Positions 12,051-61,619 of a stretch of 64,000 nt of DNA are shown piece after piece (position 1 is the first letter of the stretch; the number at the start of each line of letters is the position of its first letter). A model generated the notes under the pieces. That model was not told the DNA's origin. It did not search any database and saw only the letters and a list, made by a program, of their open reading frames with translations. The stretch lies in the NCBI GenBank assembly GCA_025603075.1, contig MU626324.1, positions 1 through 64,000 on the forward strand, read 5' to 3'. Source of the DNA: Neoconidiobolus thromboides FSU 785. Taxonomy: Eukaryota; Fungi; Entomophthoromycota. The translations under genes were made by a program, and so were the position numbers.

Positions 12051-12482
12051 TAATAGATTTCTATATAAATTTAATCAAACTTTCAAACTTGTTTATACTA
12101 AATCTACATACAAGTTTATTAATACGAATTTCAAAGAAAACCATAGCTATATTTTTCATAAGCAATAACATCAGTAAACAGTTCACTAATTTTAAAATAA
12201 ATTAAAAAATCAAGGTTTACTGTGATATTCCTATAAAAGTCAGAAGTGCATCTTTAACCACTATTGCTTAAGAGTTCTAGTAGAGCTTTCAATAACAATA
12301 GCTTGTAGGAATCCGCCTCGATATTTATCAGGCCATTACCACAAATAAACCAGTAATGATGACAAGCTCTTTTTTATCATTATAGAATAGTATACCATTT
12401 TATTATAAAAAGTAAACTAGTAAAAATTTGATCAAAATTAAAACTTAAAAAATAAAAAATATTTAAAAACAGATAATAATGT

Positions 12483-12578
12483 GGGGATGTCTTTTTTGGC
12501 TTCATTTTTTCCATCTTTTGAGCACTATTTGAGTCGAAGAATTGTTAGTAAAATTCTTAAATACAAAAATACATCCCC
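12483..12578 (+). mobile_element. MITE copy 1
   Basis: GGGGATGT...ACATCCCC termini, flanked by ATGT/ATGT. Confidence 0.88.
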
Positions 12579-12973
12579 ATGTATTCTTCAGTTTTATTTA
12601 TTGCCTTTTTTTATAGATTATAAATTATCATAAAAAATGTTAGTAAAATACTGAAACAAAAAAGGGCTTCTGTTTACAATTTAATAAAAACCATAAATTC
12701 GCTCATATACGCGACATTAAAGTAATACAATGATTAATAAGTTGCTATTATTGAACTCCATTTTATAAAGTAGAGTGCATTTATTAAAAATTAGCTGTAA
12801 CCAATAATTCTTCTAAAACTTTATTCGAAGCTAGCAACCCAATTTCCAAATTTCCTATCAAACTAATAATCCCATAAAATAAATTGAGAATAATAAAGCC
12901 CAAGTAGGATCTCGAAAAATAAATTTAAAAAAGAAAATATTTCAAATTTAACTTCTTGATTGTAAACTACAAA

Positions 12974-13465
12974 ATGGTAATAAATAAAAATTAAGATATA
13001 GAATAACTTTAATTAAATAACTGAAATTTAGACTGAAGCCAACCCAAAAGCCTTTCCTCTTGCTGATGCTACCCTTTCCAACTCGATCCTTGATCTTGTT
13101 CAACAAGCTTCCCATTATAAACAATTAAGAAAGGGAGCTAACGAAGTTACCAAAACTCTTAACCGTGGTATTTCTGAATTTATTGTCATGGCTGCCGATT
13201 GTGAGCCTATTGAAATTTTACTTCATCTTCCACTTCTCTGTGAAGATAAGGTACTTTAATTATTTTTATACTAATTTTTAATGATATTAATTTAATCAAA
13301 TTATAGAACGTTCCTTATGTCTTTGTACCCTCTCGTTCAGCTTTAGGACGTGCTGCTGGTGTTTCTAGATCCGTTATTGCTTGTTCAGTAACTACTAATG
13401 AAGCTTCTGACCTTAAACCTCAAATCAATAACCTTAAGCTTCAAATCGAAAAACTTCTCATCTAG
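12974..13465 (+). CDS. SNU13: SNU13/15.5K L7Ae-family snoRNP and U4/U6 protein, 126 aa (absent from ORF track)
   Basis: Exons 12974-12976 (ATG only), 13032-13250 and 13307-13465 give [95 protein letters not shown]... Confidence 0.97.
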
Positions 13466-13833
13466 ATCGTTAACTTTAAATGTAGATTTTCTTAGTGCTG
13501 ATACCATCTTTTATATTTTTCAGGTCACATGATGCACATGAAACTTTTAATGCTTTGTTTATAGAATTGTCATTTTTTGGTTGTCAGTGTATACTAATAA
13601 ATTTTACTATTTATTATCATTGTAATTTTTTTGAATGTTGTATAAATTAGTTTTTTGAAATTTAGAGGTTAACTGTTCTATATCCGGCCTCTATGCTACT
13701 TAAATTACATGCCTGTAATTTAATGGTAATAATAGGTACTTTGATTGATTTTTAAATAATGTTTATTATCATTATGTCAATTAAATTCAAAGTAATCGCA
13801 GCTTTTTAACCAGAGAAATATATAACATGATAT

Positions 13834-13931
13834 GGGAGTGTTTTTTTTGAATTCATTATTTTTTCGATTTTTAAGCGCTATTTAGGCGGAAAAATTATTA
13901 GTAAAATTCTTAAACACAAAAATACATCCCC
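13834..13931 (+). mobile_element. MITE copy 2a
   Basis: GGGAGTGT...ACATCCCC termini, flanked by ATAT/ATAT. Confidence 0.88.
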
Positions 13932-13935
13932 ATAT

Positions 13936-14032
13936 GGTAAAGTTTTTTTGGCCTTATCATTTTTCCCATTTTTTAAGCGCTATTTGAGCAGAAAAATTAT
14001 TAATAAAATTTTAAGCACAAAAACACATTCCT
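13936..14032 (+). mobile_element. MITE copy 2b (head-to-tail with 2a, degenerate termini)
   Basis: Same internal consensus; shares the ATAT at 13932-13935 with copy 2a and has ATAT on its right. Confidence 0.82.
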
Positions 14033-14184
14033 ATATTAAATTTTGGAATCAAATATTTCAACTATTTAACAAGTTAAAGCGAATAAAAATTCAAAATCTT
14101 CTATTAAAAGCTACTTATACACTATATATATAAAATAAAGATTTTGAATTAATTTTGAATTAAGTATAAAAGTGAAATCAATAT

Positions 14185-14284
14185 AGGGATATATTTTTGT
14201 ATTTAAGAATTTTACTAACAATTCTTCGACTCAAAAGTGCTTAAAAAATGGGAAAAGTAATGAAGCCCCAAGAAAGGCACCCCC
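14185..14284 (-). mobile_element. MITE copy 3
   Basis: Reverse orientation, flanked by ATAT/ATAT. Confidence 0.85.
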
Positions 14285-15208
14285 ATATGGAGCTTAAAAA
14301 AGAGTATAAATTTTTAATAGCTTATATTGATATTAGTAATTTTTGAATTAGTTGTTTAAACAATAATGATAAAAACTAATATAGCTGATATTATTGCTTT
14401 TATACTATATACATATTACTATTAAATTTAAAGAAAAAACCAGGGGATATTAAATTATATCAACCAAGGGAAGTTATCAAACCAAATGATATTAATGATA
14501 TCAAAGAATCTATTATTATAGATAATATTGAATTTAGAATTAAAATAAAAGTAATTATAATTTAATCAAAACAAATCAATATAGATAAACGATTTACTCA
14601 TTGTTCTTTAGCATTAATATGATACTCATAATGGAAATAATGATAAATATTTTGATATTTATAATAGTAGTTTTCATATATTAAAAGAGTTTTTAGCTGT
14701 GTTCCTTTCAATCAAAAATATATGTAAAAGATAGTTCTTTTAAATAAATTGAAATAACTGAAATATACTATTATTTAATTATATCTAACTACTTAAGTCT
14801 TATGATATTATGAAAAAAACCAAAAATATTGAACCTAGTTTTTATTAATTTGTTAATGAAATTGAATCTAGTTTAATTTATTTTCGCTAGAATTTTCAAT
14901 TAAAGATGGAACTTCTAGTAAAAATATAGTTGTTGCAACCCTTTTACAACTTATTTAACGGTAGTTTTTATAAGTGAATTTTTGAACAACTGATTTTTTT
15001 AAAAGTATGATTCAATTAGCAGAGTTTTAATCTTTTTAGTAGCATATTTAAGGATAAATTCATATTAAAAAAGAACTGCAACAGTTTTAATAATCAATCA
15101 AGAACTAAGCTAATACTAAGAAATTAATAAAATGACAGCATTTTAAAAGTGGCAAAAAAATATTTTTAAAACTTTTAATTTCAATTAACTTAATTTCAAT
15201 TTCCAATA

Positions 15209-16247
15209 ATGCCAACAAAAGGTGAAGAAACAAGTATCAATCCTGCAAGAAGAACACGTAATTGGGCATTAAGAAGTAATCCAATACAAAGGACAGATTC
15301 AGCACCAATTACAACTAGCTCCACTTTACCTAAAAAAAATTCCATTAGTTATCAATCAAGTATAAGAAATGCTAGTGTTTCTAATAGTCCAACAATATCC
15401 AAAGATAATCTATTAATAACTTCAAATAACTTGAGAAGTCCTAATAAGAATACAATTAATTACAGTCAATTGGAAGAAAATGATCAAAAGAGAGAAAATG
15501 AGTATAGATGTCCATTTTGTAATTCATGTTTTATAAGCGAATATACTATCAATAAGCATATCAACGAACAACATCCTGATTTTTCACCAAAAATAAAAAA
15601 GGAAAGTAATAAAAGTATATTTGATTCGGATTCCGAAGAAGATGTTCTTGGAGAAGCTATTAATTGGATTAAACAAAAACATCAAACTATCATTAAACCT
15701 ATACAAAAACAAACACCTAATTTACAGCAAATTCAAAAATTAGTAAGAGGAGATCATCCGGATATCGTATTTGATAAACATCTTAAAAGAGAAAATTCAG
15801 TACAATCAAATAGTAATATGGGGAATGAAACTACTATTAAAACAAGTCACTATAAAAATGTTAATCAAGCTAAAAATTGTTTTGATAAAAATTGTAATAA
15901 AACATTGGGATTATTATCAGGAAAAGTCAATTGTAAAAGGTAAATTATTTTTTATTTTAATAATGTTATTCTTAATATTAATATAATAGATGCGGAGAAG
16001 TATATTGTGAAGAACATAGTGATTTTTCAATGAAATTGGACAAGAATGCAATACACGATCCTGTCAATGGATTATGGTATAAAGTATGTTTTGATTGTTA
16101 TAAAAGTAAAGCCAATTATAAAAATGAACAAATAATAACTCGGGATCTTACTTTAAACTTTAAAACAATAAGAAGAAAAGTAGTAGATAAATTACAATTA
16201 GAAACTAATAGATTAGATACTAGATTAAAAAAATTAGCTTTAATTCA

Positions 16248-16292
<45 letters not shown>

Positions 16293-17279
16293 GTTTGGTT
16301 CTATTAAAAAGAATACAAATAGATTAGCAGAACAAGCTATTGTCCCCTGGCAACCAGATGAAGAAGTTAATAATTGTCCTTATTGTCTTCGAGTATTTAA
16401 TAGAATAACTTTACGTAAACATCATTGTAGATTATGTGGTAAAGTAATTTGTAGTAATATCAAATGTTCATCTAAAATAGATTTAAGTTCATTGATTGAG
16501 AAAGGTAAATTAGTATATTTTAAGAAATAAATTTTATTATTAAATATTAATTCAACATTTTGTTTTATTTAGTAAATACCAATTCAATGAATAAATTAGA
16601 AATACTTTGTTGCCAAGAATGTCGTAAAATAGTACTAAAAAAACAAGAAGTCTTGAATTTTAAAAAAGAAGATTTAACATTAATAAGAAATTATAATCAA
16701 TTAAAAAGATATCAAACGATAATTCAAAAATCATTACCTAAATTCAATTCACTCATTTATTCTATTAAAAGTAAAGCATCATTTAATGAACAAGATAATG
16801 AAGTTCAATCTGCATTAATAATAAGAAAAGAATTATTAACTACTTTTTCCCAATTTGAAACTTCATTACAAAGTTTCAAAAGAATCCCAACTAATAATCA
16901 TTTACAACAAAGATTATGTCAAGGTATTATTACTGAAGCTATTCAATTTTTACAAGCTAACACAGTGTCTCTATCAATGTTACCTAAATTACTAAATCAA
17001 AATCAAAAGTTAAATAAATCTATTGCTACCCCAACTTCTAAAATTAATGTTGTTAGTTTAAATACAGAAGCCAATTTGGATTTATTGGACAATAATTTAA
17101 ATCCAGATTTATTTGTTTTAAAACAACAATTAGATGTATTTGAAGAACAAAAATTCAATTTAATAGCATTTATTGAAGCAGCTACTAAAGAACGTAGACT
17201 GGACGATGTGAGAAATTTGTCTTTAAATTTAAAGGAATTAGAAGATGAAATTCAATTATTAAAAAATAAAATTAAATAA
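15209..17279 (+). CDS. PEP7: PEP7/VAC1 (rabenosyn-5-like) FYVE zinc-finger vacuolar sorting protein
   Basis: Exons 15209-15939, 15990-16505, 16573-17279. Has a C2H2 finger (CPFC...HINEQH), a degenerate FYVE, a canonical FYVE (WQPD...RKHHCRLCGKVIC) and a C-terminal Rab-binding motif (EAATKERRLDDVRNLSLNLKEL). Confidence 0.88.
16252..16290 (+). repeat. (AAT)13 coding microsatellite (poly-Asn) in PEP7
   Basis: 39 nt of AAT in frame between the two FYVE-like domains. Confidence 0.92.
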
Positions 17280-17354
17280 TAAGAATTAATATTTGGATTT
17301 ATTTCTTTAGCTATTAAAAATAATTTATTAATCTAAACCTTAAAAATAGCAAAT

Positions 17355-17453
17355 GGGGATGTCTTTTTTGACTTCATCACTTTTTCCATCTTTTGAGCGC
17401 TACTTAAGCGGAAAATTTATTAGTAAAATTCTTAAGCACAAAAATACATCCCC
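17355..17453 (+). mobile_element. MITE copy 4
   Basis: GGGGATGT...ACATCCCC termini, flanked by AAAT/AAAT. Confidence 0.9.
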
Positions 17454-17586
17454 AAATATTGAATAATAATAATATCAAAAATTTATAAAAAAAAAGATTC
17501 AAAATAATTATAAATAAAGCCTCTATATTAAATTAAAAAAAACTAATTCTTCCCCTTTTTCAAATCTATCTTTAACTCATCTATTT

Positions 17587-19317
17587 CTACCATTCAAGTT
17601 TACTAGCTTTTTCTGCTAATTTAACTGCCTCTTGGTTTTTTTCTTGAATTTTTAATTTACGATCTAATAACTCGGCCATAGTTACTTCATCTTTTTGGAT
17701 TTGGTCAAAATGTTGAATTGTTTTAATATCTTGTGGCATATCACCATGAACTTTACGCTATTAATTAACAAATTAGTAATTCATTCCTTTATTATTCAAA
17801 ATTAAAATACTTACAATTCTATTAGCATGGCCAATACCCAATCTAACAAATATAAATATAAATATAAATCAATAAAGTTGAAATTAAAATTAAAATTAAG
17901 TTCTCATATCACTTACTTTGGCAATCCTCTATTTAAACCTTCTAAAAGAACACAAGCTTTACATAACTGATTACTTGACATATACCCACATCTTTCACAT
18001 GTTTCTTTATAATATATAAAAATTAAATATCTATTTTAACCTTATTTTTTATAAGAATTTAAAACTTACTTTGAGTTGGTAATTTAATATTTGTTTTGAG
18101 TACAAAAGCTTCACCAGAATGAATAACATCTGAAAAATAATAAAATTTAACAAATCAGAATAATGCAAGAATTAGAATATTTACCCAAAATACTAGTAGC
18201 TCGAATAGCTTCTAAATCCTTTAAAAAAACTCGAGCATGACCTCTATAAGCATTAGGTGAATAGATACACTCTGTTGAAAAATAATCCAAATTTTTGAAA
18301 TAAGCGTACCTAAAAACTTATATTAATTCTTTTTCTTTTCCCTTTATGACTACTCTATAGTAGCTAATAAATTCATTTACATAACAATTTCTTTTTCATA
18401 AGTATATTTAAAAGGTTTGGATCTTTTCATACCCGATTCACCAGATGTTACAATTTCCGTACATCTTTGTAATCGTGCAATATCACCTCTTAACACTAAT
18501 TTTATTGAGTATTAGTATTTACATTAACAATAAAATAAAATAAAAGTTTTTAGAATGATGATTTTTTTTTGATCGTTTCAGTTTTTTTTAACTTACCATT
18601 CATTAATATAGTTTCTGCAATATCATCTGCATTATGACCGGTAACAATATGATGAACATCTAACATTGTAGCTCCTCGATCTAATGCTTGTCTTCTAAAA
18701 ACACCACAAAAAGTGCCTAAAGATTCAATCAATTAAATTAATATAATTTTATAACTCAATAAATGAAAACAACTTACAATTATTTTTTCTACCCACTTGT
18801 TTAACAATATCATCCATAGACCACTCATATAACTCTTTATAAGACACGATTTTTAATGGTAAATCATATTGTTCTTTATTTCTTTTAACCGTCTATAAAT
18901 TGATAATTAAGTTTTTATTAATTTAATTTTATATTTAAATTATTTGTATCTTACCTCTAAAGAATCATCTCTATAACCAGTAATACCTTCATCAACTGAA
19001 AGAAGAATTAATTCAAGTCCATAATCATATCTATCGTTAAGTAATTTCATTATATAAGCTAAGACTGTCGAATCTAAATAAAATAAATTATCAATAAATA
19101 ATATTTAGTTTACTTAATATTAAAATAATTTACCTTTTCCGCCAGAAGCACCAATGGCCACTCTATCATTACGTTGAAATAAATTATTATCTGTAATCGT
19201 ATTATGAATCTCAGTTTCAAAGACTAAAAAAAAACATGATTTGCAAATTGGTTGCCCTGTTTTTGGTCGCTTAATGATCGCTTTTGAGACTTGACATAAG
19301 GCACATGTTTTAGCCAT
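17587..19317 (-). CDS. NCS6: Cytoplasmic tRNA 2-thiolation protein 1 (NCS6/CTU1), multi-exon
   Basis: N-terminal CxxC (CALC, CKSC), PP-loop ASGGK|[26 protein letters not shown] and a C-terminal [16 protein letters not shown]; the final exon ends EW* at 17587. Confidence 0.94.
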
Positions 19318-19536
19318 TTTTTATTAGTAATTGGTAAATTTGTAATATTTTCAAAAAGAAAAATAAAATTTGAGATTTAATGGATCAAATTTGAAGCTGA
19401 GGAAATGTTATTAAATTTAAGAAATTTTGCAAATGGATGAACTATTGCAAAAAGTTTGAAATTAGGATATATGGTAAAAGTGGCACCAATTAAAAAACAA
19501 CATTGATTTTGATTTTATAAATTTTCTATTAAAATA

Positions 19537-20206
19537 ATGGTAATATCTCATTTAATAACCATCTTCATTCACTTATTAAAGTATCCTATTTTAGACAAAT
19601 CCTCCAATAAATTCCAATCTCATTGAAACTTATTTTAAAGCCATCGAATTGGGTGATAGTGATTCTGTTCGAGAGATCTTAGAAAAAGAACGAAATTTGA
19701 CTAAAATTAAAAGGAGAGGCGAATATCAATATGATACTTCTATTGAACTTGATGCTTATAAATTTCTTGGTGCTTATTTAGGCGCTGTTTCCGGTCTACA
19801 ACTTGCATTATTGCTTGGTTATGATTCAATTGCTAGAGATATTGCAGATATTACCTTTGATCAAGGTAAGTAATTAAAATTTTAATAATAATAATTTTAA
19901 TTTAATGAGTGATTAATTGGATTATTAGATTTAAATATGATATTTGGGGTAAATTAAATTTAATCTTTAGTTAATTTAAAAAAGAAAATTATATCAATAA
20001 CAGAATATTGATAATCTAACTTTTTTATATTTATTTTATAGGATAATAATACAACATTACATTTGGCCGCTTTTTTAGAAAACAAAGAAATGGTTCAAAG
20101 TTTACTAGAAAGAGGAGCAGATGCTAATGCTAAAAATGGTAAGGGATTTACTCCCTTAGATGTCTCAAATGACAGTCAAGTATCCAAATTATTGTCAAAG
20201 AATTAA
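19537..20206 (+). CDS. Small ankyrin-repeat protein
   Basis: Exons 19537-19539, 19595-19865, 19929-19948 (20-nt micro-exon) and 20042-20206 give ...DQDLNMIFGDNNTTLHLAAFLENKEMVQSLLERGADANAKNGKGFTPLD, which is an ankyrin consensus. Confidence 0.82.
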
Positions 20207-20558
20207 GGGGTTTCTAAGGGTAAATTAATTGGATTTTAGTAATAAAGAGGCTTTTTTCATATTGAAAGGTAACTGTAAATTGACTTAGAGGGATTGTTAC
20301 ATATTTTAAATATTAAATTTAGTATTAATAATAATTTATCAAATCAATTTCACTTAATTATTACTTTTAAAGAATTTATTATATTAAATAGTCGTAGAAA
20401 ATAAATAAGAGTAATTTTTATTAATAATGATACCATTTGAAATTAATTTTACTATAAGATTTTAAAATACTTTTATTTCAAATTTATTTCAAACTTATTT
20501 TTATGAAAAAAGTAGAACTATTTTTTACTTATTTCTCATTGAAAATCATCTTTGAAAA

Positions 20559-21220
20559 ATGATAAGAATTGATCAATTATGTAATTACCGTTATAGATTG
20601 AACTTGCCCTTTATTAAGAAAACAGTTAATACCTTACTATTATCAACAAAATACCCTAAATGGTCTATTGGTGTACAATTTATTAACTATGAACAAATGA
20701 AAGAACTGAATTTAGAATATCGAAATAAAAATAAATGTACTGATATTTTATCATTTCCATTTCATGAAGTAAGATTAATCAATTAATAATTATTTAATAA
20801 ATTAACCTGTTTTCTCTTATTCTAGCCGTTAACTCCAGGTAGTTTACCTTCCCCAGAAAGCCTAACAACTGATTTATCAATACAACAAAGTTATCAAGAT
20901 TTAGGGGATATTTATTTATGTTTAGAATACATTGAACTCAATTCCAAAACTCTTGATTATACAATGGAGAGCCGATTACCTATTTTATTAACTCATGGTA
21001 TTACTCATTTAATGGGTTATGAACATGAAGAAGAAAAACAATACTTTGAAGTAAGTAAAAAAAAGGAAGATAGAAAAGAAGGAAATGGAGTAATTTAAAA
21101 CAATTTATTAATATTACTTTTTTTTAGATGAATAAAGTGGAAAATGAAATGTTATTAAAATATTGGTGGTGGAGAATGGGAAAGAGAGAATTAATTAAAG
21201 AACAATACTTTTTGAAATAA
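20559..21220 (+). CDS. YBEY: YbeY/UPF0054 endoribonuclease (rRNA maturation factor)
   Basis: Exons 20559-20768, 20826-21050, 21128-21220. Motifs YRNKNKCTDILSFP, DLGDIYLC and the Zn-binding H-x3-H-x5-H (HGITHLMGYEH). Confidence 0.9.
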
Positions 21221-21506
21221 GAAGAGATAAAAGGTGATAAAATAATACTATAATAAAAATAGAATCTATAAGTTAATAAAAATTTAATTTAATTTAATTT
21301 AATTTAATTTAATTTAATTTTTTAATAAATATAAAAATAATAATTTTGAGATCAAATTATTATTCAGTGATTTTAGATAATATTATCATATTATCTAAAA
21401 CACAAATTATTTTTTTAAATTTTGATTCAATTGATTTAAAAAAGTAGTTGTAAATTTACTCGTTTTTTGATATTGCTTAGTTAGATCGATATTAATATCT
21501 TCTAAT

Positions 21507-21769: not shown

Positions 21770-21965
21770 TTTGAATATGAATTTTTGTTAAAAAAAAGAT
21801 TATTAAATCAATTGGAATGAATTTTATTTCAAAATAGGGAAAATTGAGTTGATGACAATAATCAGTTTTTTTTCGAATTTCTATTGGTCAATTGACAAAT
21901 AATTTTAAAATTCAAATATTAATATTCAAAAGTTTCAATATTAATCTCTCTTTAATAAAAATAAG

Positions 21966-22902
21966 ATGGGCATATCACAAAATACAGAGATTAATTTAAA
22001 TCCTAAAGATTCTAATAATATACTATACAAATATCATCAATTTATTAAATTAAGTGAAGATGTTGTTAATTCAACTGATAATAAAGATATTAAATTGTTA
22101 AATTCAATAAAAGAGTTAACGAATTTAACTAATAATAATAATAATAACAAAATTAAGAATAATAAAGAGAATAACAAAGAAAATGATAATAAAGAGAATA
22201 AGATTAATTTGAAGAAAATCATTAATAATAATAATTTGTCGATTTATAAAGGTTATTTAAATGGGTTAAAGGAATTAAATGTGGTAAGTATTATTATAAT
22301 ATATTTTATTTATCTATTATTATATACATTATTTATTATTAGAGTATTATTAATTTAGAAAAATGTATTCAAAGTAATATTACTCAATGTAATAAAATCG
22401 AAACAGAGATTAATTGTAATAAAATTAAAGCAGAAAATATGTATACTTTGATTAGTGAAATTGAAGAAAAAAATCAATCAAAAAAGAAAGAATATTCAAC
22501 AATTATTAATTTTTTAAAAGAATATACATTAAGTGAAACCGAGATTCAATATATCTCAGAAAAAGAAGTCGATAAAAAATATATTGAATTAAGTAATAAA
22601 TTACAAACAATAGAAACACAAATGAAAAATATTAAAGAAAAAGATCAATTTGGTAAATTATCTCAAGAAATTAATAATTTTATTACAATTTATCGTACGA
22701 TTACAAATAATAAAATTATACAATATTTAATATTACAAATAAAACAAAATGAGTTAGATACATTAGATTATTATAATTCAATATTAATCGAAGCTATTAA
22801 AATTTTATGGTCAAATCAAAAAGAATTTAAAGAGTTTTTAAATTTAATTTATGATATTAGAATACAACATTTAAGTTATCAATTAAATTTAATATTAAAG
22901 GG

Positions 22903-22937
<35 letters not shown>

Positions 22938-23101
22938 TAAATAATATAAATAATAATGAAGATTATTATAATAATAATAATAGACCATTAGATATGTATA
23001 TTGCAGATCCAATTAAATATCTAGGTGATTTATTAGCTTATTTACATCAATTTTTAATTGAAGAAAAAGATTTATTATTTAATTTGTTTTTATTAAATCA
23101 A

Positions 23102-23185
<84 letters not shown>

Positions 23186-23543
23186 GATATTACACCGATA
23201 ATACAATTAATAGATCGAATATTTAATACTCTATTGAATAATATATTACAACAAATGAATAATATAATTAAAGAAATTAATAATCTATCATTAATTTATC
23301 AATTATGTCAATTAATGGAATTTTATTATAAACTATATTTTAAAGTATTTTTAAATTTCAAAGAAATAGAATTTTTAATAGAAATTAATAATTTAATTCA
23401 TTTTTGTTATCAACATTTTTATTTAATATTAGATGATCAAATTACTTTTCTTCTAGCTTCTGCTGATGTTCCAAATGAAGAATTAAGTGTTCCAGATAGT
23501 ATTAGAATTTGTTTAGAAGATTTTAAAAAAATTGTGAATTTAT

Positions 23544-23577
<34 letters not shown>

Positions 23578-24468
23578 AATATCAAAAATAAAAGAGAATA
23601 AAGAGGATAAAGAAGGAGATATAATAAAAGAAGAAAATTTCATATCAGAATTAATCAATAAAATGATATATCCTTTAATTCAATTATGTGAAAGAGAATC
23701 CAGTTATTTAATTAAAGAAAATGAAAAATCAATTTATATAATTAATTGTTTAATATTCATAAAACTTCATTTAAAATCGAATTATGAATTAGATTTAAAT
23801 ATCTTTTTAAATTTAGATAATATTATTCAAATGCATTTTGATACTTTAATTGAATTACAAGTAAGTTTTATTAATTTTAATTTAATAAAGATAATATTAT
23901 TAATGATAATTTGTTTTAGTGTGACTATTTATTAACTATGGCTGGTTTAAAAGAACTAGAAGTAAGTTTATTAATAATATATAATTTAATTTAATTTAAT
24001 TTAATTTAATATTTAACTTGTTATTAATAGGAAGATGGATTAAAATATCAAGAATTACTTACCCTCATTATGTCAAATGAAAATAGTAATATTAATGAAG
24101 AAGCTTCAATTCAAGATTTCTTAATCTCTATAATCTTTGAAAATACACCAATTTACCTTCTTAGTTTTAAAAAAATGGAAACTTTTTTGTATACTGTTGA
24201 TTTAGATGATCCCAATTTTGATGAACTAAAATTCAATCGATTAAATTTAATAGAAAAAAAACAAATATTCGAATTAAAAAAGAAAGCAATTAAGTTGTTT
24301 TTAAATAAGTATGCAATGTTATATCCATTCTTAAAGAAATTGATCGAAGTGGAAATAAACGAAGTAAAAGAAGATAAAAAGGTAGAGAAGGAATTTTTAA
24401 AATTAAAAGAGTGTAGATTAAGATCTGTAGAAGAGTTAGATACTTTATTATTTATACCAGATGTATAA
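21966..24468 (+). CDS. COG6: Conserved oligomeric Golgi complex subunit 6, with poly-Asn insertions
   Basis: Exons 21966-22283, 22343-23860, 23920-23961, 24031-24468. Motif DPIKYLGDLLAYLHQ, then LLTMAGL and a C-terminal RSVEELDTLL. Confidence 0.85.
23102..23179 (+). repeat. (AAT)26 coding microsatellite (poly-Asn) in COG6
   Basis: 78 nt of uninterrupted AAT in frame. Further shorter AAT tracts lie near 22903-22980 and 23545-23575. Confidence 0.95.
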
Positions 24469-25377: not shown

Positions 25378-25475
25378 GGGAATATATTTTGTGTTTAAGA
25401 ATTTTACTATCGATTTTTCCGTTTAAATAGCGCTTAAAAGATAGAGAAAGTGATAAAGCCAAAAAAAACACTCCC
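25378..25475 (-). mobile_element. MITE copy 5
   Basis: Reverse orientation; flanks TAAT/ATAT do not match. Confidence 0.8.
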
Positions 25476-26560: not shown

Positions 26561-26659
26561 GGGGGTGTTTTTTTAACTTCATTATTTTTTCCATTTTTTA
26601 AGCGCTGTTTAAGCGGAAAAATTTGTTAGTAAAACTCTTAAACATTAAAATACATCCCC
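26561..26659 (+). mobile_element. MITE copy 6
   Basis: GGGGGTGT...ACATCCCC termini, flanked by AAAT/AAAT. Confidence 0.9.
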
Positions 26660-26733
26660 AAATACTGAAAAAAGTTATCATATATAATCCATAACAAATA
26701 ATTAATCAAAATCGTTTTAATAAAGCATAATAT

Positions 26734-28917
<2,184 letters not shown>

Positions 28918-29021
28918 TGCTATCTATTTTTAATTTTATTGTTACTTAAAATTACAAAAAATAAAGTAATTACGTCTTATTTGTTCATAATTAAAATTTT
29001 AGACTTTGCATAAAACTATAT

Positions 29022-29117
29022 GGGGGTGTATTTTTGTGTTTAAGAATTTTACCAACAAATTTTCCGCTTAAATGGCGCTTAAAAAATGGAAAAAATAAAG
29101 TCAAAAAAAACACTCTC
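29022..29117 (-). mobile_element. MITE copy 7
   Basis: Reverse orientation, flanked by ATAT/ATAT. Confidence 0.88.
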
Positions 29118-30546: not shown

Positions 30547-30641
30547 GGGGATATCTCTTTCTCTTTAGGAGATTTACTAATATATTTTCCACCTAATAGT
30601 GCTTAAAAAAATGAAAAAAGTGATGAAATCAAAAAACACCC
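30547..30641 (-). mobile_element. MITE copy 8 (diverged)
   Basis: Reverse orientation, flanked by ATAT/ATAT. Confidence 0.78.
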
Positions 30642-43079: not shown

Positions 43080-43168
43080 GGGGTATTTTTTCCAGTTTCA
43101 TCACTTTTTCCTTTCTTTAAGTACTATTTAAGCGGAAAAATTCTTAGTAAAGTTCTTAATATGTCCCC
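43080..43168 (+). mobile_element. MITE copy 9 (internal deletion near right TIR)
   Basis: GGGG...CCCC termini, flanked by AAAT/AAAT. Confidence 0.8.
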
Positions 43169-52800: not shown

Positions 52801-52865
52801 TTAAAGAAGCCACAGACTCAGAGAATTTGTTCTTAATGTATATTGGCTGGGGTAGCGTCTACTAA
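43887..52865 (+). CDS. MEC1: ATR/MEC1/Rad3 PIKK checkpoint kinase
   Basis: Intron-rich 5' part joins in frame to a 4860-nt terminal exon (48006-52865). Has UME-like and FAT regions, kinase motifs (KPKDDLRKDARLMEF, YIVGLGDRHGEN, HVDFSCLF, VPFRLT) and FATC (NLFLMYIGW). The exact start and 5' exon structure are less certain. Confidence 0.92.
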
Positions 52866-52989
52866 AATTAAGTCAAAATAAAACTATTGATCTTATGTAA
52901 GTGAAATTGTTTGTTTATTTTGTTATAAAATAGGTTCGATTTTAATATCTTTTTACCTTATATCTAACTATACTGTTTGCTAAACATGT

Positions 52990-53088
52990 GGGGGTATATT
53001 TTTTCACTTAAGAATTTTACTAGTAATTTTTCCACTCAAATGGTACTTAAAAAATGAAAAAAATAATGAAACCAAAAAAAACATCCCC
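52990..53088 (-). mobile_element. MITE copy 10
   Basis: Reverse orientation; flanks ATGT/ATAT (one transition). Confidence 0.85.
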
Positions 53089-53614
53089 ATATAGTGCCCA
53101 AAATACTGTCAATGGCTGTGATGATGAGATTACTGATGGTTACCGTATTTGAACCATTATTAAACAATAAAAGTGTTATTAATGAATCTCCAATCAAAAG
53201 TGAGTCCAAAAAAACCACAAACATATATAATATTATAGGTCGTTAGTCATTTTATTTTCTTTATGAAATATGTTTTTTATAGTTTATTTTAAATCTAAAA
53301 CTCGGAATTTTTTCTATGAATATAAAACAAACTAGAAATAAATATAATATTAAAAGGCAGTAATTAATATGGTGATCTCTTATTTAATTTCATTTATTTG
53401 GTTGTTTTTGAATCTATTGAGTGGAAATTTTATTAATAGAGTCTTTAAACAAAAAAAAGATGTGCATGTGTTTTGAGTTAGCTGTATTTTAGTTATGATT
53501 CTTTTGAACTAAAATATGATTTGTAACTTATTTTAAAATATCATTAATATAAAATAGAGAAGTATGAATTTAATAGTAACTGAAATTGAAAGGTATCCCT
53601 TGTAGCAAGAATAG

Positions 53615-54242
53615 CTATTCCTCTTTTTCGCCTTCAGCATTAAGAGTAGCAGGGATGTTTGAATTGGTGTTTTCTTTATGATTAGTACTATTACTACTAT
53701 TGTTTAAATTATTGTTTTGTGTAGTTGCATTATTTAATGAAGCTTGGATAGCTGCTAATGTGTTTTCTTTTTGTGCTTGTTTACTATTCTTAGCATTATT
53801 GATTAAGCCGACTTTTCCAATATAACTATTGGAGATATTTGGTTTACGAATAGTCCTGATTTCTTCAGATGCAAATCCTGGTATTCTTATATTCCAATTT
53901 CTCTCTGTTTATTATTAAATTACTTAATCCTATATTTATTTTTGATTTTATTTACCTAAATGAAGCTGCACGTCTTTTACTTCCAAATTTTGTGTTTTAC
54001 GGTGCTTGGCTAATCGACATGCTGTACCTACAACGCTTTCAATAAATTCATCTGCTATTTCTAATAAAATCTATATATAAAAATTAACTGTCTAGCCATT
54101 GAAATATTCTTTTACTTACATCTTCTGCGTCTGGATCCATTCTTTCTAATGGGTTTATTTTGCTAACCAAATCTTGTATTCTACGCTTTGACACCAATTT
54201 TGTGTTTTCACTCATCCCTATAGTGCGTGGTTTTGGTTGCAT
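53615..54242 (-). CDS. TAF12: TFIID/SAGA subunit TAF12 (histone fold)
   Basis: [25 protein letters not shown]|[38 protein letters not shown]|[11 protein letters not shown] across two introns. Confidence 0.94.
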
Positions 54243-54386
54243 TGTTAAAAAATGAAAATGAAATTTTACAAAATTAGAAATAAAATGTAATCTCATCTAA
54301 AACGATTGGCTTGAATGCACCAATAAAATAGAAGACGTAATTTTTTTAAAAATAACTTGGATGATGGTTTCTTTCATCGTTTTACT

Positions 54387-55374
54387 ATGAGTAGTATAAA
54401 TTTATTATTAAACTATACTTTAATAAATGAGGGTAGCCTTCATCCAAGCATCAAATATAGATTGAAGCTGGTTGAGAACAGAGAAATAAAGGAGGATAGT
54501 AAGAATAGCCAAAGTAACAATATATTAAATATAATCAATAAAATAACAAACAAGAAGGAAGATGAGCGTCAAGATAAGTGTAAAAATAATAATTATTTAA
54601 TAATAATCCATCAAAAAATCACTAAAGATTTATTTGTCGATCCCTATCAACTAGAACAGCACAAAGAATATTACAAAGATTATTTCAAAAATAAAAATAT
54701 AGGTATTCAGTTAATTTATTCTAAGTTAGATTTAGAGTTACCAATTTACGAAGTCAATGATAGCTTTGTTAATTATTTTCAACTGTTATGGAATGTTAAC
54801 AATTTCACCAATAAAAACGAAATTAAATTTACATTACCATTACATTTAAGATATAGAAAACCAAATTATGATACTAGATATGAGATAATTAATATAAATC
54901 CCCCTAATTTGAGCTTAATGTGTTTAAATGGTAACTATTGATTATATTTTAATTTTCTTTAAGCTAACTATTTTAGATGTCAATTATAATACAAATAATT
55001 ATAATAATTTGATTGATAATATAAACAATGTAAAGCAAATGCCATACAACTTAGCTCTATTTAATAGTAATATGGATATAAACGATAAAAACGTTATTTT
55101 AGTTAATAATACCAATGATAATTATAATTTACGAAAGATTAATAAACAAGAATACTACTTCCCAAATAACAATTTAGCTTTACCAAAAATGAAAATAAGA
55201 GCACCAAATGGAGATTTAAATTATGAAATAATAGTCGGTATAATCACTTTATTATCCTTATTAATAGTCATTTATTACTTGATAACCAGTATCAAATCTT
55301 ATTCTCCAAAAAAGAATTTACTGTCTCCCCCTAATTCACCTACTTCATTAAAGCTTAAAAATAAAAACAACTAA
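54387..55374 (+). CDS. PBN1: PIG-X/PBN1 GPI-mannosyltransferase I accessory subunit
   Basis: GSLHP, DLFVDPYQL, DLELP, LPLHLRYRKP and a C-terminal TM helix; one intron near 54930-54977. The start codon is uncertain. Confidence 0.75.
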
Positions 55375-55391
55375 AGTTTGATTTATTTATT

Positions 55392-55628
55392 TCAGTTTCT
55401 ACCTAAGGCGCCTAAGGCACCACCACCAAATACATTTCCTAACATCTCTTGAATTAAATTAACTGGAATAAATGGACCCATCACCCTTGGTGCAAAGTTT
55501 TGAGTAGTTGAAATTGGACCCCACGTACCTGACGTGACCTCAGTTGGATTGCTATTATTATCTGCTGGAGCACCAATTATAAGACTAAGAGATAATAATA
55601 AACAAAATAAATAAGCTGTGATGTTCAT
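55392..55628 (-). CDS. 78-aa predicted secreted small protein, unknown function
   Basis: Single exon. Signal-peptide-like MNITAYLFCLLLSLSLIIGA followed by a Gly/Pro/Thr-containing mature part; GC-richer and more coding-like than its flanks. Confidence 0.65.
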   Translation of the reverse strand: MNITAYLFCLLLSLSLIIGAPADNNSNPTEVTSGTWGPISTTQNFAPRVMGPFIPVNLIQEMLGNVFGGGALGALGRN

Positions 55629-55977
55629 TAGTTGTATAATTTTTATTTTATTTTTATTTTGTATTTATAGTGTTCTAATTTAATTTATGAGTTACTCAAG
55701 TTTGAATTGTCTTTAATTTTTTAACGGTTCTGATTTTATATATCAAATTAATAATTAATTTCAGTAAGTGTATCAATTAATTATTTATAAATAGTTGCTC
55801 ATTCTTATTTATAGCATATATTAATATTTATAATATATCAAATATTATGATGTACGCCATTATTTATATTTCATTTAAATTACGACGAAAAAGTATTTAC
55901 AAAGAATGACTAATTTAAATTAACTTTTTTTAATTTAACAAAATAAAATAACAAACTTTAGATCTTAAAAAACGATA

Positions 55978-56835
55978 ATGAATCAGCTAAAAAGAATATT
56001 ACAAACTAATCAACATATAAAGTTATTAAAATCAAACTCATCATTTAATAATTTATTGAAAGCAAAATTTCATACTCAGATAGCCTATGGTTTATCTTCT
56101 GGATATCATTTTGATACCTATCAATTCTCACAAAGGTTAGAAGCAGAAGGATTTAACTCAAAGCAAGCGGAGACCATTGTCAATGCTTTGGATGAAGTAT
56201 TGAATCAAAGGTAAAGTCATAGTCATAGTACTAATAGGAATAATAGTAACTGTAATGCATATGAATCAAAAGTTAAATAATAGAATGATTAACGTAAAGT
56301 TTAGTATAGATGATTTAGCTAAGGAGATGGTAACCAAAGAAGAGCAAGAAAAAGTAATTTAATAGTCATATTTAATATTCTTGATTAATTAAATAATAAG
56401 AGCATTTATACATATAAAATTGATTTTACGCAATTAAAAAATGAGATTAAGATGCATGAAAAGAAGGATTATGAGTTACTGAAGTTAGAAAACGAGCGTT
56501 TACTTTCTGAAGTTGAAAAACTAAGGAGAGAATTTAAAGATGAAATTAATAAGTCTCAAGCTGGCTTTCGACTCGATATGAATTTAGAAAAGGGTAGATT
56601 AAAGGATGAAGCTAATAATCAAGCTAGTAAATTAATTGACTCTCAAGCTAAAGTAGAACAAGAAATTTTTTCTCTTAAAGCTCAATTAGAGAATATTAAG
56701 TTTCAAATTTTACAATATATGGTCGGTACCATCACTGGTACTTCTGCTTTAATCTTAGGTAATTGGTTTTTATTTCATTTTATATTAATCATGCTCATGT
56801 GTTTTATCTTAGCTTATTTAAGAATGTTTAAATAA
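55978..56835 (+). CDS. DUF1640 / CCDC90-MCUR1 (Fmp32/Put6/Put7-like) mitochondrial coiled-coil protein
   Basis: Basic presequence-like N-terminus, YHFDTYQFSQRLEAEGFNSKQAETIV, FRLDMNLEKGR and C-terminal LQYMVGTITGTSALIL|AYLRMFK. Confidence 0.85.
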
Positions 56836-56915
56836 AAGTATATTGTTTTTATTACTGCTTTTTATTGTTTTAATAGAAATGAAATTTAAAAATTATAACT
56901 ATAACTGTTTATAAT

Positions 56916-58673
56916 TTAAAGTGGAGGAAAAAGAATATTAGGATCATTAATAACAGAATCAGTAGTTTCATCTCGTACTTGTTTAAGGAAAGGTATAAGA
57001 TCTGTACCACCTGTACCACGGAATGTATCACTATCGGATTCTGCACTAGCTTTACTTCTGGCTAATCCAAATTCTAAATTAAATTTTGCACTATTTTTTC
57101 GGGTCAATTTGTTGGCTGAGTTTGCTAACTGTGGGTAAGACAAATCAACACTTCCTGACCCCGTTCCGCTTCTTAATCTTGGGCTCTCTCTTACAAATGA
57201 GTTTGGGTTAGAGCTATTTGAAGTTGGACTTTGACTAATTCCATTGCTACTATTATTTACATTGATAATAGATATAGGAGAAGAAGACCTTGTACTCCCT
57301 TTTGTATCATTTTCTGGTATACTATCTAGAATATTAGTACTACTATTAGGGTTAGGATTAACTAAAGATGAAATAATAGAATCCTTTCTTAGATTGTCAG
57401 GTTTAATAGTATGCTCAGAGTCAATAGTAAAACTACCAATAGAAGGCCCTTTTCTTGCAGGTACAATAATATATCGGGTTACTATTTTTATGTGTTGATC
57501 TCTGAACTCTTTTAAATTTAATACGCACTCATTATATGCCTCTGCACATTCTCCTCCATTTCGTTCCACAAATTCTTTTATATTGCTAACTAATGCTAAA
57601 TCTTCTAAAAATTTACGATGTAACCCTGGCATGTAAGCGCGCATACTGTATAAATAAGTTTCACTTGATTTCTTAATTTCACCTTTTTCCTTCATTTTTT
57701 GCCATTCAGAATTTGTCGGATAATGCACAATGCCTAATGCAATGTCTAATACTTGAATCAAAGCGCTTTGTGCTGCCGAGCCACCAGCGTACTGACGAAA
57801 TTGAATAGGATCTCCGACTTTCCTATCAATATCATCAACCCCTTTATAAAGAATACCATGAGGCAATCCAGCTTCACTCATGTTTTCCCAGCCTGCTAAA
57901 TAAGGTCTTAATTTCCAATAAAATAAATAGGGATCACATTTCTCATACATTCTATCTAATAGTTCGGTCATGCCTTTGATTGAAGCTGCCATTTTTTTTA
58001 GTTCAATTATTACGTTTTGTGTATCAATTGATTTTATATAATTTAGCGTATTTATTATTGATGATAATGCTATTCCTCCTTTTGCTTCAATTGCTACTGT
58101 AATTAAATAAAACCATGCTTCATCTAAAGATCCTGTAAATGAGCTTAGTGTACTCAAATTATTTAAGTCGACTTCTTCTTCTTCGTCAATCAATTTCCAA
58201 TTCCACAATACAACCGCTGCATTACAGCTTACTGGATTAATGCCTAATTTTTCCGATATTTGAACTAGTGGCACAGCAATGCATTCGGGTAAGGCTTGAG
58301 AAACAGGTTCATTTTTACCCCAAATAAATGAGTGTTGAAGGAAAGTCAAAATTGAAAAAGCTCTCTGATATTCTTTTAAATTGATTAATTTATCGATTGA
58401 TAACACTTTCAATTGTAAAATTCTATTACGATATTTCCCACATAATAAGAGATCCTTCATATCCGCAATTAATGTTTCCCAAGGTTCATAATAGATATCG
58501 CTTAATCTCTTTAGTGGCGGTGTAGCTGGAAGAAATCCAGTTTTTGGGTTCATGTCATAATCTTCAAGTTTGGGTATTTCCAATTTACTATTGTCTTCTT
58601 TTTTAGTAAATAACTTTCCCAATTCACTGATGTAATTCTTTGGAGGAATACTTTCTACTTTAGTTTGTGTCAT
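56916..58673 (-). CDS. BNA2: Indoleamine 2,3-dioxygenase (kynurenine pathway), single exon
   Basis: GFLP, DEAWFYLITVAIE, YAGGSAAQSALIQ, MRAYMPGLHRKFL, FRDQHIKIVTRYI and GTGGTDLIPFLKQVRDET. Confidence 0.95.
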   Translation of the reverse strand: MTQTKVESIPPKNYISELGKLFTKKEDNSKLEIPKLEDYDMNPKTGFLPATPPLKRLSDIYYEPWETLIADMKDLLLCGKYRNRILQLKVLSIDKLINLKEYQRAFSILTFLQHSFIWGKNEPVSQALPECIAVPLVQISEKLGINPVSCNAAVVLWNWKLIDEEEEVDLNNLSTLSSFTGSLDEAWFYLITVAIEAKGGIALSSIINTLNYIKSIDTQNVIIELKKMAASIKGMTELLDRMYEKCDPYLFYWKLRPYLAGWENMSEAGLPHGILYKGVDDIDRKVGDPIQFRQYAGGSAAQSALIQVLDIALGIVHYPTNSEWQKMKEKGEIKKSSETYLYSMRAYMPGLHRKFLEDLALVSNIKEFVERNGGECAEAYNECVLNLKEFRDQHIKIVTRYIIVPARKGPSIGSFTIDSEHTIKPDNLRKDSIISSLVNPNPNSSTNILDSIPENDTKGSTRSSSPISIINVNNSSNGISQSPTSNSSNPNSFVRESPRLRSGTGSGSVDLSYPQLANSANKLTRKNSAKFNLEFGLARSKASAESDSDTFRGTGGTDLIPFLKQVRDETTDSVINDPNILFPPL

Positions 58674-60201
58674 TTTTAGTACCCTTTGTTTTTTCTCTTT
58701 TTTTCCACAATTTGATTATCTTGGTTTTTGCTTTTATATCTTTATCTTATATCTTTATTCTTAAAAGGTTTTTATTCTAATAATGTATTAATAATAAACG
58801 TGATTTGACTTTAAGCTAATATTTAAATAAAAAGGACTAAAACAAGCAATTTTCGTAATAGTTTTTTTGCAGATCTAAATTTATGTAAAATTTATATAAA
58901 AAATGAAATAATGTAGAATATAAGCGAGACGTAAATGTTACCAACTTAGCAAAAAAAGTTCTTAATAAAATAAGGTTTTTAAATCAAACCAATAATATCA
59001 TTACTGAATATTAAATAAATGCCTGTTGTTGTTTATAACTGTTATTTTATGTGTTGTTGTATTTAAAATTTCTGTTTTACAAAAAAAAGTATTTTATTCT
59101 CAAACAAAGCTATTAAACTAGTTTTAACGAATAGGTCAATAATGTTTTCAATACGTTTACACTAATGCTAATAAAAGCAGTAATGAAATGTTTAAGAAAA
59201 ATGAATTCTTGAACTTTAAACATTTGCTATAAAAAAAACATATACTATTCTCAATTGGATCAAATAAAAGTAATTTCATTTAAATAGAGCCTATGAATAC
59301 AACTATTGTACTTTTGTTGACACAAATAGGAATAAAAGTAGTATTATAATCTGCTTGAAAGTAGTACGATTTTTAATTCATTCTCACTTCAATCAAAAAA
59401 ACTTAAGAATATTATTTAAAAATTTGAGCGTTGTGTTATAAATAAGGTAAATAATAACAATAATTAGATCTTGTATTAGTATTCGATGCTCACAAAAAGA
59501 ACAAGACGGATGATGACTCACCTTTAGCAGTGTTTTTAATAATAATATAAGTAAATAAGCCCTAATCGTGGGTAGATAACTATAAATATAGCAATCAATA
59601 AAAACCAAGTGAATTGTTATAAGTTTACTACTTGATACTTATATTAATAAACTGGAACTCTGAACTTTAAATCAATATTATACTAAGTATAGGAATAATA
59701 ATGCTAGAATAAACTTTAATTCAATATTAACAATTATAATAAACTTAAAAATTTCACATAATTGTTATAAAGAATTACATGAAAACAAATGAATACCAAT
59801 ATTAATTTTTACTCGTTTTTAAATACCTCTTATACAGATTATAGTGATAGTAGCATAGAAATATAAAATAAGAAAGTATATATTTTTGTAGTATGTTTAA
59901 AAAAAATATATTCGAAATTCGTTTTATTTTTTATAGATGGTTGAAAATATAACGCATCAAGCGTTATTTTTTGCAAGCTGCTACTAAAACTCTATTAGTC
60001 TAACATAACCTTTTATTCCCTCTTGTGTGTTATGTGTACTAAATAATACGTATAATGGTCAAAAAAGAATTTATCAAAAATGTAACTTTTATATAGCTTT
60101 TGTAGATTAAAGGGTTTAAATATAATAAAAGTATTCTAACCCCCTATTATTTATCAGTGTTACTATTATAAAAAAGTAAAAACATAAAGAAATTAGAATA
60201 T

Positions 60202-60299
60202 GGGGATGTATTTTTGTGTTTAAGAGTTTTACTGACAATCTTTCCACTCAAATAGTGCTTAAAAAATGGAAAAGTAATGAAATCGAAAAAAACACCCCC
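60202..60299 (-). mobile_element. MITE copy 11
   Basis: Reverse orientation, flanked by ATAT/ATAT. Confidence 0.88.
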
Positions 60300-60336
60300 A
60301 TATAATGCAACTCATTAGTAGTTAAAGACATTATAT

Positions 60337-60434
60337 GGGGATGTATTTTTTTGTTTAAGAATCTTACTACAATTTTTCCACTCAAATAGTGCTTAAAAAA
60401 AGAAAGATAATGAAACTAAAAAAAATAGCCCCCT
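60337..60434 (-). mobile_element. MITE copy 12
   Basis: Reverse orientation, 135 bp after copy 11; flanked by ATAT/ATAT if the terminal base is a C>T variant. Confidence 0.84.
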
Positions 60435-60515
60435 ATATTCAAGTTATTAGTTGATTGTAAATAATGGTTTTAAATTATATTTTTCAAAATTACAGTAAAT
60501 CCAACAAAAACATTC

Positions 60516-60612
60516 AGAGGTGTTGTTTCTGGTTTCATCACTTTTTTCATTTCTTAAGTGCTATTTGAGTGGAAAATTTTTTAGTAAAATTTTGAATAAA
60601 CACATTATCTCC
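60516..60612 (+). mobile_element. MITE copy 13 (degenerate termini)
   Basis: Internal consensus TTCATCACTTTTTTCATTTCTTAAGTGCTATTTGAGTGGAAAA retained; flanks ATTC/ATTT. Confidence 0.7.
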
Positions 60613-60815
60613 ATTTATTTTGAATAGCACATTTATAAATAAAATAATAAAAGTCTTCTTTTCACATATATTGTTTCTATCTTCCAACATAAATTTTTAC
60701 GAAAATAGTTTATACCATATAAAATTATTACTATTTTAAGTCAAACAATTAAGCTTTTATTTCATTAATTTAAAAATCATATAAAACCAAATTAAAGATA
60801 AATTATTAAGGCTAT

Positions 60816-60914
60816 GGGAGTGTTTTTTTTGACTTCATTATTTTTTCCATTTTTTAAGCGCTATTCAAGCGGAAAATTTGTTAGTAAAATTCTTAAGCAC
60901 AAAAATACATCCCC
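60816..60914 (+). mobile_element. MITE copy 14
   Basis: GGGAGTGT...ACATCCCC termini; flanks CTAT/ATAT. Confidence 0.87.
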
Positions 60915-61619
60915 ATATGTTGCTAAAACCAACATAAAGCTTTATTATAAATTTCGAACTAAAAAAGAGTATTATAATAGAATCATTGATTTAACTATGA
61001 TATATGATGGTTCAAGTTTTGTTCAATAATAATTTTAATATTTATTTTAATACCTTTTTAGTACTACTTGTAATTGCCTTTTTCATTTTTTAAATGCCTT
61101 AAAAATTCAAAAGTATTTTTTGCATCATTTTGTTACTATTACTTATGATTGATACGTTTAATTATTAAAAATAGAATATAAAAAATGCTAATAAATGTAT
61201 AATAACACTGTGAGGAAGTTTCAATGACAATGCCAACAACCACAAAAATCCTATGAAGTCATCTGCTAAACTGTAGTAATCCCTTGGGTTTGCTCATTTG
61301 TTATACTGGCAACCTTTTGACATCTCATGCCCTATAATTAATAATATACAATTAAATCTATATATTATTATAGTCACTATAATGGCTATAATTTGCTATT
61401 TATTATTATTATATACTTTTGTTAAACTTTGTATAGCTTTGAAGATAGAATAAAGTACAAAAGTATAGTGGTAAACTAGATAAAATTATACTAACTTAAC
61501 AAACTTATCTCGTTCTTATTTTGAGAGTATACGTTACCAATTCTCAAAATTTAATCTGAAATCTGTTATCAAAATTTTTATCCCCTTTTATTCAAGATAA
61601 GCATTATCTTACTAATATT

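Follow-up and report, generated by a model that had tools for sequence, protein, structure and literature searches.

A probable miniature transposable element family of 99 bp with a Sola-like footprint in Neoconidiobolus thromboides

The stretch of DNA analyzed here (hereinafter, the window) consists of positions 1-64,000 of contig MU626324.1 (assembly GCA_025603075.1) of Neoconidiobolus thromboides FSU 785, an insect-pathogenic zoopagomycete fungus of the entomophthoralean group, with window coordinates identical to those of the record. The G+C content is 25-30% across most of the window, and neither tRNA nor Rfam features were found in it. The deposited gene calls, which cover the regions 1-21 kb and 47-68.7 kb, include a HECT E3 ligase gene (133-10941), an L7Ae/SNU13 gene, a FYVE/Rabenosyn-like gene and genes for an ATR kinase and IDO. 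Interspersed with the genes of the window is a non-coding 99-bp repeat that is present in 15 good copies and is described here as a probable miniature inverted-repeat transposable element (MITE).

A repeat search yielded two families which are the two orientations of a single 99-bp element, with eight copies on the plus strand and seven on the minus strand (Table 1). An nhmmer profile built from the 15 copies recovered exactly those 15 in the window, with E-values from 1e-22 to 2e-34, whereas the next match, at 53367-53457, was weak (E 6e-4) and, when aligned to the consensus, was found to be a decayed relic of the family, that is, a 16th copy. A 17th copy, in good condition and with ATAT on both sides, lies 1.8 kb past the end of the window (L001:2788-2886). 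When the window was scanned with patterns, a 35-nt core matched four times (0.00 expected) and the terminal pattern GGGGRTGTnTTTTTT matched 21 times (1.8 expected), 20 of the 21 matches being ends of copies. The repeat is real and its abundance is far beyond chance. The sequence-only reading of this DNA had listed 15 copies of a consensus of about 99 bp in both orientations; the same 15 were returned by both the repeat search and nhmmer, and the majority consensus is indeed 99 bp long, but the decayed copy in the window, at approximately 53371-53460, had not been counted. The density is about one copy per 4 kb of the window; extrapolation of this density (16 copies in 64 kb) to the whole genome gives what may be thousands of copies, accounting for approximately 2% of the DNA.

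The consensus is bounded by imperfect terminal inverted repeats (TIRs) of 14-15 bp, GGGGRTGTnTTTTT ... AAAAAnACAYCCCC, and contains an internal inverted pair, TTTTTCC/GGAAAAA, that encloses two direct TTTAAGCG motifs. Both features, the former as imperfect repeats of about 14 bp and the latter as an inverted pair around a duplicated motif, had been recognized earlier and both are present in the consensus. In the alignment of the copies, 83% of the cells of the terminal helix are paired. The extreme bases vary among the copies, with GGG or GAG at one end and CCC or CTC at the other, and with GGGAG in some cases.

The most telling feature is found in the flanks, which were scored with the element proper taken as GGGG...CCCC. 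A perfect direct duplication of 4 bp borders 10 of the 15 copies (ATAT in six, AAAT in three and ATGT in one), and in two further copies the flanks agree at three of the four positions. Random 99-bp intervals drawn from the same sequence have fully matching 4-bp flanks in 0.92% of the cases, which translates into a binomial P of about 1e-17 for 10 out of 15. Because ATAT is its own reverse complement, it could, taken alone, belong to a longer TIR. The non-palindromic duplications (AAAT in three copies, ATGT in one) are, however, direct repeats in each of these four cases, for example AAAT...AAAT and not AAAT...ATTT, and therefore the flanks are target site duplications (TSDs) rather than parts of the TIRs. 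The two units of the head-to-tail dimer at 13834-14032 are arranged as ATAT-copy-ATAT-copy-ATAT, the layout expected if a later copy had inserted into the target that the earlier one had duplicated.

Table 1. Copies of the 99-bp element in the window, with flanking 4-mers and genomic context
Feature	Coordinates	Strand	Length (bp)	Flanks (left/right)	Identity to consensus	Context and remarks
MITE copy	12483..12578	+	96	TSD ATGT/ATGT	87%	Divergent spacer separating the HECT E3 ligase gene from exon 2 of L7Ae/SNU13; within the L7Ae intron annotated as 1,622 bp long
MITE copy	13834..13931	+	98	TSD ATAT/ATAT	90%	Head-to-tail dimer, unit 1; begins 369 bp past the L7Ae stop codon (13465)
MITE copy	13936..14032	+	97	Left ATAT = right TSD of unit 1; own right TSD ATAT	80%	Head-to-tail dimer, unit 2
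MITE copy	14185..14284	-	100	TSD ATAT/ATAT	84%	
MITE copy	17355..17453	+	99	TSD AAAT/AAAT	90%	Spacer between convergent genes
MITE copy	25378..25475	-	98	ATAT/ATTA (2/4 match)	88%	Gap free of open reading frames, 24.5-26.7 kb
MITE copy	26561..26659	+	99	TSD AAAT/AAAT	89%	Separated by 78 bp from the final open frame of a Metallophos-type gene (minus strand)
MITE copy	29022..29117	-	96	TSD ATAT/ATAT	89%	Upstream of the Metallophos-type gene, ~100 bp from its first open frame
MITE copy	30547..30641	-	95	TSD ATAT/ATAT	69%	Old copy
MITE copy	43080..43168	+	89	TSD AAAT/AAAT	76%	9-bp internal deletion; amino-acid transporter gene on one side, next plus-strand open reading frames on the other
MITE copy	52990..53088	-	99	ATAT/ACAT (3/4 match)	83%	Between convergent genes
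Decayed relic	53371..53460	+			~63%	
MITE copy	60202..60299	-	98	TSD ATAT/ATAT	90%	IDO-RRM spacer (divergent genes, 3.35 kb)
MITE copy	60337..60432	-	96	Right ATAT; left ATAT shifted by one base	84%	
MITE copy	60517..60613	+	97	TSD not recognizable	75%	Ends degraded
MITE copy	60816..60914	+	99	CTAT/ATAT (3/4 match)	94%	Nearest to consensus

The repeat shows the generic hallmarks of MITEs: it is non-coding, shorter than 800 bp, dispersed and multi-copy (15 copies and one relic in 64 kb), occurs in both orientations, and is bordered by duplications of a fixed length, 4 bp in each of the 10 perfect cases. The identification of the 99-bp element as a MITE can accordingly be made with high confidence. 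The sequence-only reading had proposed a non-autonomous DNA transposon, and this proposal is borne out by the shortness, the lack of coding capacity, the multiple copies in both orientations and the TIRs, to which copy-specific 4-bp TSDs can now be added. Among the classical MITEs, Stowaway is associated with Tc1/mariner, Tourist and mPing are associated with PIF/Harbinger, and mimp is found in the fungus Fusarium. The family in N. thromboides resembles these in its size of about 100 bp, its TIRs, AT-richness, high copy number, location near genes and in sites resembling untranslated regions (UTRs), its division into subfamilies and a transposase that would act in trans. It differs from them in the TSD, which is a 4-bp A-N-N-T rather than TA (Stowaway, mimp) or TWA (Tourist), and in that only the terminal ~20 bp are self-complementary, so that there is no near-perfect foldback.

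The length and composition of the duplication also bear on the superfamily. A fixed 4-bp duplication excludes Tc1/mariner and PIF/Harbinger as well as hAT, Mutator, P, Merlin and Transib, the last five of which generate longer target duplications. For a Tourist-like member of PIF/Harbinger, in particular, the target would be a 3-bp TWA, and this candidate was rejected given 4-bp duplications in 10 of the 10 perfect cases. The piggyBac and Kolobok transposons share the 4-bp TSD with the present family but require a TTAA target (piggyBac additionally has short TIRs that end in a C/G triplet); TTAA flanks none of the 15 copies, and both candidates were likewise discarded. A Stowaway-like Tc1/mariner MITE could still be envisaged if the true duplication were the central TA of ATAT, with the element extending as T-GGGG...CCCC-A. 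Such a TA lies inside all six perfect ATAT flanks, and Tc1/mariner is the commonest type of DNA transposon in entomophthoralean genomes (PMC11105155, PMC5751038). A TA duplication was in fact the initial interpretation, and it was dropped once the AAAT and ATGT flanks had been seen: four copies carry one or the other of these 4-mers at each end, where no TA is in register, and duplication extends to the outer A and T in every one of the 10 perfect cases, which a 2-bp duplication leaves unexplained, so the whole 4-mer is duplicated. A Stowaway-like origin is thus very improbable.

Sola elements produce 4-bp TSDs (PMC10741241). Sola2-type transposons are known from Bao, Jurka and Kapitonov (2009), and those of the dictyostelids Dictyostelium fasciculatum and Polysphondylium pallidum (DFa/PPa families; Bao and Jurka, 2013, PMC3627910) have TIRs of 12-21 bp, insert into targets of the AWWT type (ATAT, AAAT and ATTT), and end in GAG/GAA ... 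CTC (PMC3627910 supplement). The element of N. thromboides has the same AT-rich type of 4-bp TSD, with ATAT (six copies) and AAAT (three copies) common to both and ATGT (one copy) as the exception, TIRs that are similarly short (14-15 bp), ends that begin with G and finish with C, and an AT-rich host. It is this combination of a 4-bp AWWT-type target, short TIRs and G-first/C-last ends, similar to that of the published Sola2, that leads to the assignment to Sola, although this is a resemblance in footprint and not proof. Judging by the length and composition of the TSD, the length of the TIRs and the terminal bases, mobilization of this MITE family by a Sola/Sola2-type transposase appears moderately likely. 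The differences from the described Sola2 elements are considerable. Those elements are 2-15 kb long and encode a DDD transposase and sometimes Fanzor, whereas the present one is a non-coding 99-bp sequence; their termini are GAG/CTC compared to GGGG/CCCC here; and the host in this case is a zoopagomycete, from a group without reports of Sola, and the link to a transposase is putative.

Several observations weigh against the reading as a Sola-type MITE family. The termini are GGGG and not the GAG of the dictyostelid Sola2, one TSD (ATGT) departs from the AWWT type, and the single report of Sola2 from fungi comes from a survey of other species, N. thromboides not being among them (PMC5751038). 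The evidence for the assignment, which for this reason is favored only to a limited extent, comes down to the length and composition of the TSD and the terminal bases. No larger element with these TIRs and no transposase was detected in the 64-kb window or in the 4.7 kb beyond it; in agreement with the earlier reading, which had seen no transposase in the window, the window also has no solo TIR that would bracket a larger element. The family may be long inactive, its copies being 6-31% diverged from the consensus. Finally, no empty site or insertion polymorphism was seen: of the 14 words sampled over the copy at 60816 +/-31 bp, each of the four DNA data sets with this locus contained 6-10, a resolution too coarse to exclude polymorphism.

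A rival reading is a MITE of another superfamily, either Ginger1 or one with an undescribed DDE transposase that likewise makes 4-bp staggered cuts at AT-rich sites. A superfamily call made from the TSD and the termini is weak, no transposase was seen in the window, the GGGG termini and the single ATGT target set the family apart from the dictyostelid Sola2, Sola2 itself is almost unreported in fungi (PMC5751038), and Ginger1 also produces 4-bp TSDs (PMC6839031). Ginger elements, however, end in TG...CA, like elements with long terminal repeats, whereas the present copies have GG...CC (GGGG...CCCC in full), and membership in Ginger1 was rejected on this ground; furthermore, an AWWT-type 4-bp target combined with short TIRs corresponds exactly to the description of Sola2. 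An origin outside Sola is thus rather unlikely, albeit worthy of consideration. All things considered, a MITE family with a Sola-like footprint is very likely to be the best explanation of the repeat.

Under the Sola scenario, a transposase encoded elsewhere in the genome would bind the 14-15 bp TIRs (GGGGRTGTnTTTTT) and perhaps the pair of internal TTTAAGCG direct motifs as well. The element would then be excised and reinserted, via a 4-bp staggered cut, at an AT-rich target of the form A-W-R/W-T, and repair of the staggered cut would leave the 4-bp direct duplication. A more far-reaching scenario can be imagined in which a Sola2-type burst took place in Zoopagomycota, perhaps following horizontal acquisition (e.g., from niche-sharing amoebae or insects), and some of the copies located in very short spacers, 70-130 bp from start or stop codons, were co-opted as UTR, terminator or promoter modules that adjacent genes share. 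We consider this combination improbable.

A fundamentally different possibility is that the repeat is not mobile DNA at all and that selection maintains it beside genes for a function, for example as a small structured RNA gene, a promoter, a terminator or a UTR element. The location of all copies outside exons, several of them 72-125 bp from start or stop codons, is compatible with such a role. When folded as DNA, single copies pair via the TIRs and a 4-bp central hairpin, and some of them fold better than shuffled sequences (z of -3.7 and -4.0), although others do not (z of -0.8 to -1.8), the entire range being -0.8 to -4.0. In the alignment of 16 sequences, pairing amounts to 83.7% compared to 82.7% in column shuffles, with 78 of the 500 shuffles scoring as high, and the alignment has a covariation score of 0.142 where the shuffles have 0.129, so that covariation does not exceed the random expectation. 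A single stem pair of the central hairpin switches from G-C to A-T, with seven copies on either side. This lone double change affects two CpG sites and tracks the split between subfamilies, and thus counts as one event. Searches of the window against Rfam returned nothing at the gathering score, and in a permissive search only noise from microRNA models was obtained (RF03589 at 60284-60353, with 34 bits where the cut-off is 80). The hairpin underlying the RF03589 match arises between two adjacent copies of the same orientation, whose opposite TIRs are no more than 37 bp apart. RNA data sets contain 2-3 of the 14 sampled words of the copy at 60816 and, together with the DNA data sets, these counts are compatible with presence of the copy everywhere and transcription of some copies.

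The remaining evidence concerns genomic location. The copies follow no consistent orientation rule with respect to the neighboring genes, and 4-bp direct duplications that differ from copy to copy are a mark left by insertion rather than one of a conserved gene. The IDO and Tom1 proteins have their nearest relatives in Entomophthora and Massospora. Neither a copy nor a TIR was detected in 52.7 kb of Massospora cicadina and Entomophthora muscae sequence surrounding the orthologs of these two genes, where about 13 copies would be expected at the density of the window. Given that those genomes are very differently built, this absence argues only against deep conservation. Neither of the two alternatives to a transposon that had been raised in the sequence-only reading, a structured non-coding RNA and a regulatory element conserved at orthologous positions in distant species, thus finds support in the lack of an Rfam match, in covariation that stays within the range of the shuffles, or in the orthologous loci of the two relatives. 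A conserved module as the general explanation is highly unlikely, whereas exaptation of individual copies may have occurred.

Part of the element was also used to scan JGI metagenomes, IMG/VR viral contigs and prokaryotic genomes; the only hits were single chance matches confined to the pattern, and the element is not present in the metagenome contig L011. No description of the 99-bp family was found in the searchable literature, a search that did not extend to Repbase and Dfam; to that extent, the earlier remark that it was not recognized as a described family is borne out.

Identity to the consensus ranges from 69% to 94% and the mean pairwise identity of the copies is 78%. At least two subfamilies can be told apart by diagnostic sites that vary together (AAGCGC...AAGCGG versus AAGCAC...GAGTGG, for example), which points to multiple source copies, as is usual in transposon families. 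There is no pair of nearly identical copies and hence no sign of very recent activity in the sample. Substitutions are biased from G/C to A/T, with 20-22% of the C/G cells changed compared to 9% of the A/T cells. CpG sites are changed in 33% of the cells compared to 20-22% at other C/G sites, a weak effect, and the observed/expected ratio of CpG in the window is approximately 0.63 in coding and non-coding DNA alike, with GpC at or above expectation. Because CpG is depleted to the same extent in both kinds of DNA, a CpG decay specific to the repeats was rejected. The depletion across the window is compatible with genome-wide cytosine methylation or with a mutational bias. The copy at 12483 looks like a mosaic that agrees best with the copy at 17355 in the 5' half (42/46 positions) and with the inverted copy at 14185 in the 3' half (48/50). 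Although the numbers are small, such a pattern is suggestive of gene conversion or template switching among copies separated by a few kilobases.

Ten of the copies could be checked against annotated genes, namely those at 12483, 13834, 13936, 14185, 17355 and 52990 and the four at 60.2-60.9 kb. The copies at 25378, 26561, 29022, 30547 and 43080 lie in stretches without open frames of >=70 codons or exons supported by Pfam, so that their intergenic status is approximate. The copy at 17355 lies in a spacer of 308 bp that separates the stop codons of two convergent genes, at a distance of 76 bp from that of a 650-aa FYVE/Rabenosyn-like gene (17279) and 134 bp from that of an ATP_bind_3 gene (17587). 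One third of this spacer is MITE sequence; both 3' UTRs probably enter the element, and the transcripts could be complementary there. The dimer and the copy at 14185 are located between L7Ae/SNU13 and the FYVE/Rabenosyn-like gene, the copy at 52990 starts 125 bp beyond the stop codon of the ATR-kinase gene (52865), and the spacer between the divergent IDO and RRM genes is partly filled by four copies. The copy beyond the end of the window is found 72 bp upstream of the start of an Arf gene. The claim that several copies sit within about 75-135 bp of a start or stop codon is matched by the distances of 76 bp (17279) and 125 bp (52865), and the Arf-proximal copy outside the window, at 72 bp, adds a further case.

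The sequence-only reading also held that no copy lies in an exon or an intron. No exception was seen for exons, but for introns the claim does not strictly hold under the annotation as deposited, given the position of the copy at 12483. ATAT and AAAT are only about 1.7 times more common in non-coding than in coding sequence of the window, and the absence of copies from exons would therefore reflect selection, that is, the loss of exon insertions, a chromatin preference, or both. The L7Ae/SNU13 gene model that contains the intron in question (154 aa, 11323-13465, plus strand) was reconstructed uniquely from the deposited coordinates and length. It consists of a 29-residue exon (11323-11409), the 1,622-bp intron and an exon 2 that begins at 13032, with another intron of 56 bp. 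Exon 2 opens with the conserved N-terminus of SNU13, minus the start codon; given this beginning and the short length of the other intron, the 1,622-bp intron is doubtful, and the first exon is probably mis-annotated.

The genome of N. thromboides is compact and poor in retrotransposons, with 13.5% repeats and 0.01% Ty3 (PMC11105155). At about one copy per 4 kb, the 99-bp MITE would rank among the main repeat classes of this species, and it probably falls into the 'Unknown' class of the published repeat landscapes. If true, the assignment to Sola broadens the very patchy fungal range of this superfamily. Apparently, however, this is an undescribed family of an ordinary kind of element and does not imply any new mechanism. 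The copies mark UTRs and promoters and could be used for strain typing if they are polymorphic.

The family is also relevant to genome annotation. Apart from the copy in the doubtful 1.6-kb intron, the dimer creates a stop-free frame of 100 codons (13831-14130, plus strand) and is thus a source of spurious calls of open reading frames. Elsewhere in the window, the exons of the COG6 gene (21945-23935, plus strand) have a G+C content of 15-17% and contain long (AAT)n tracts that encode poly-Asn.

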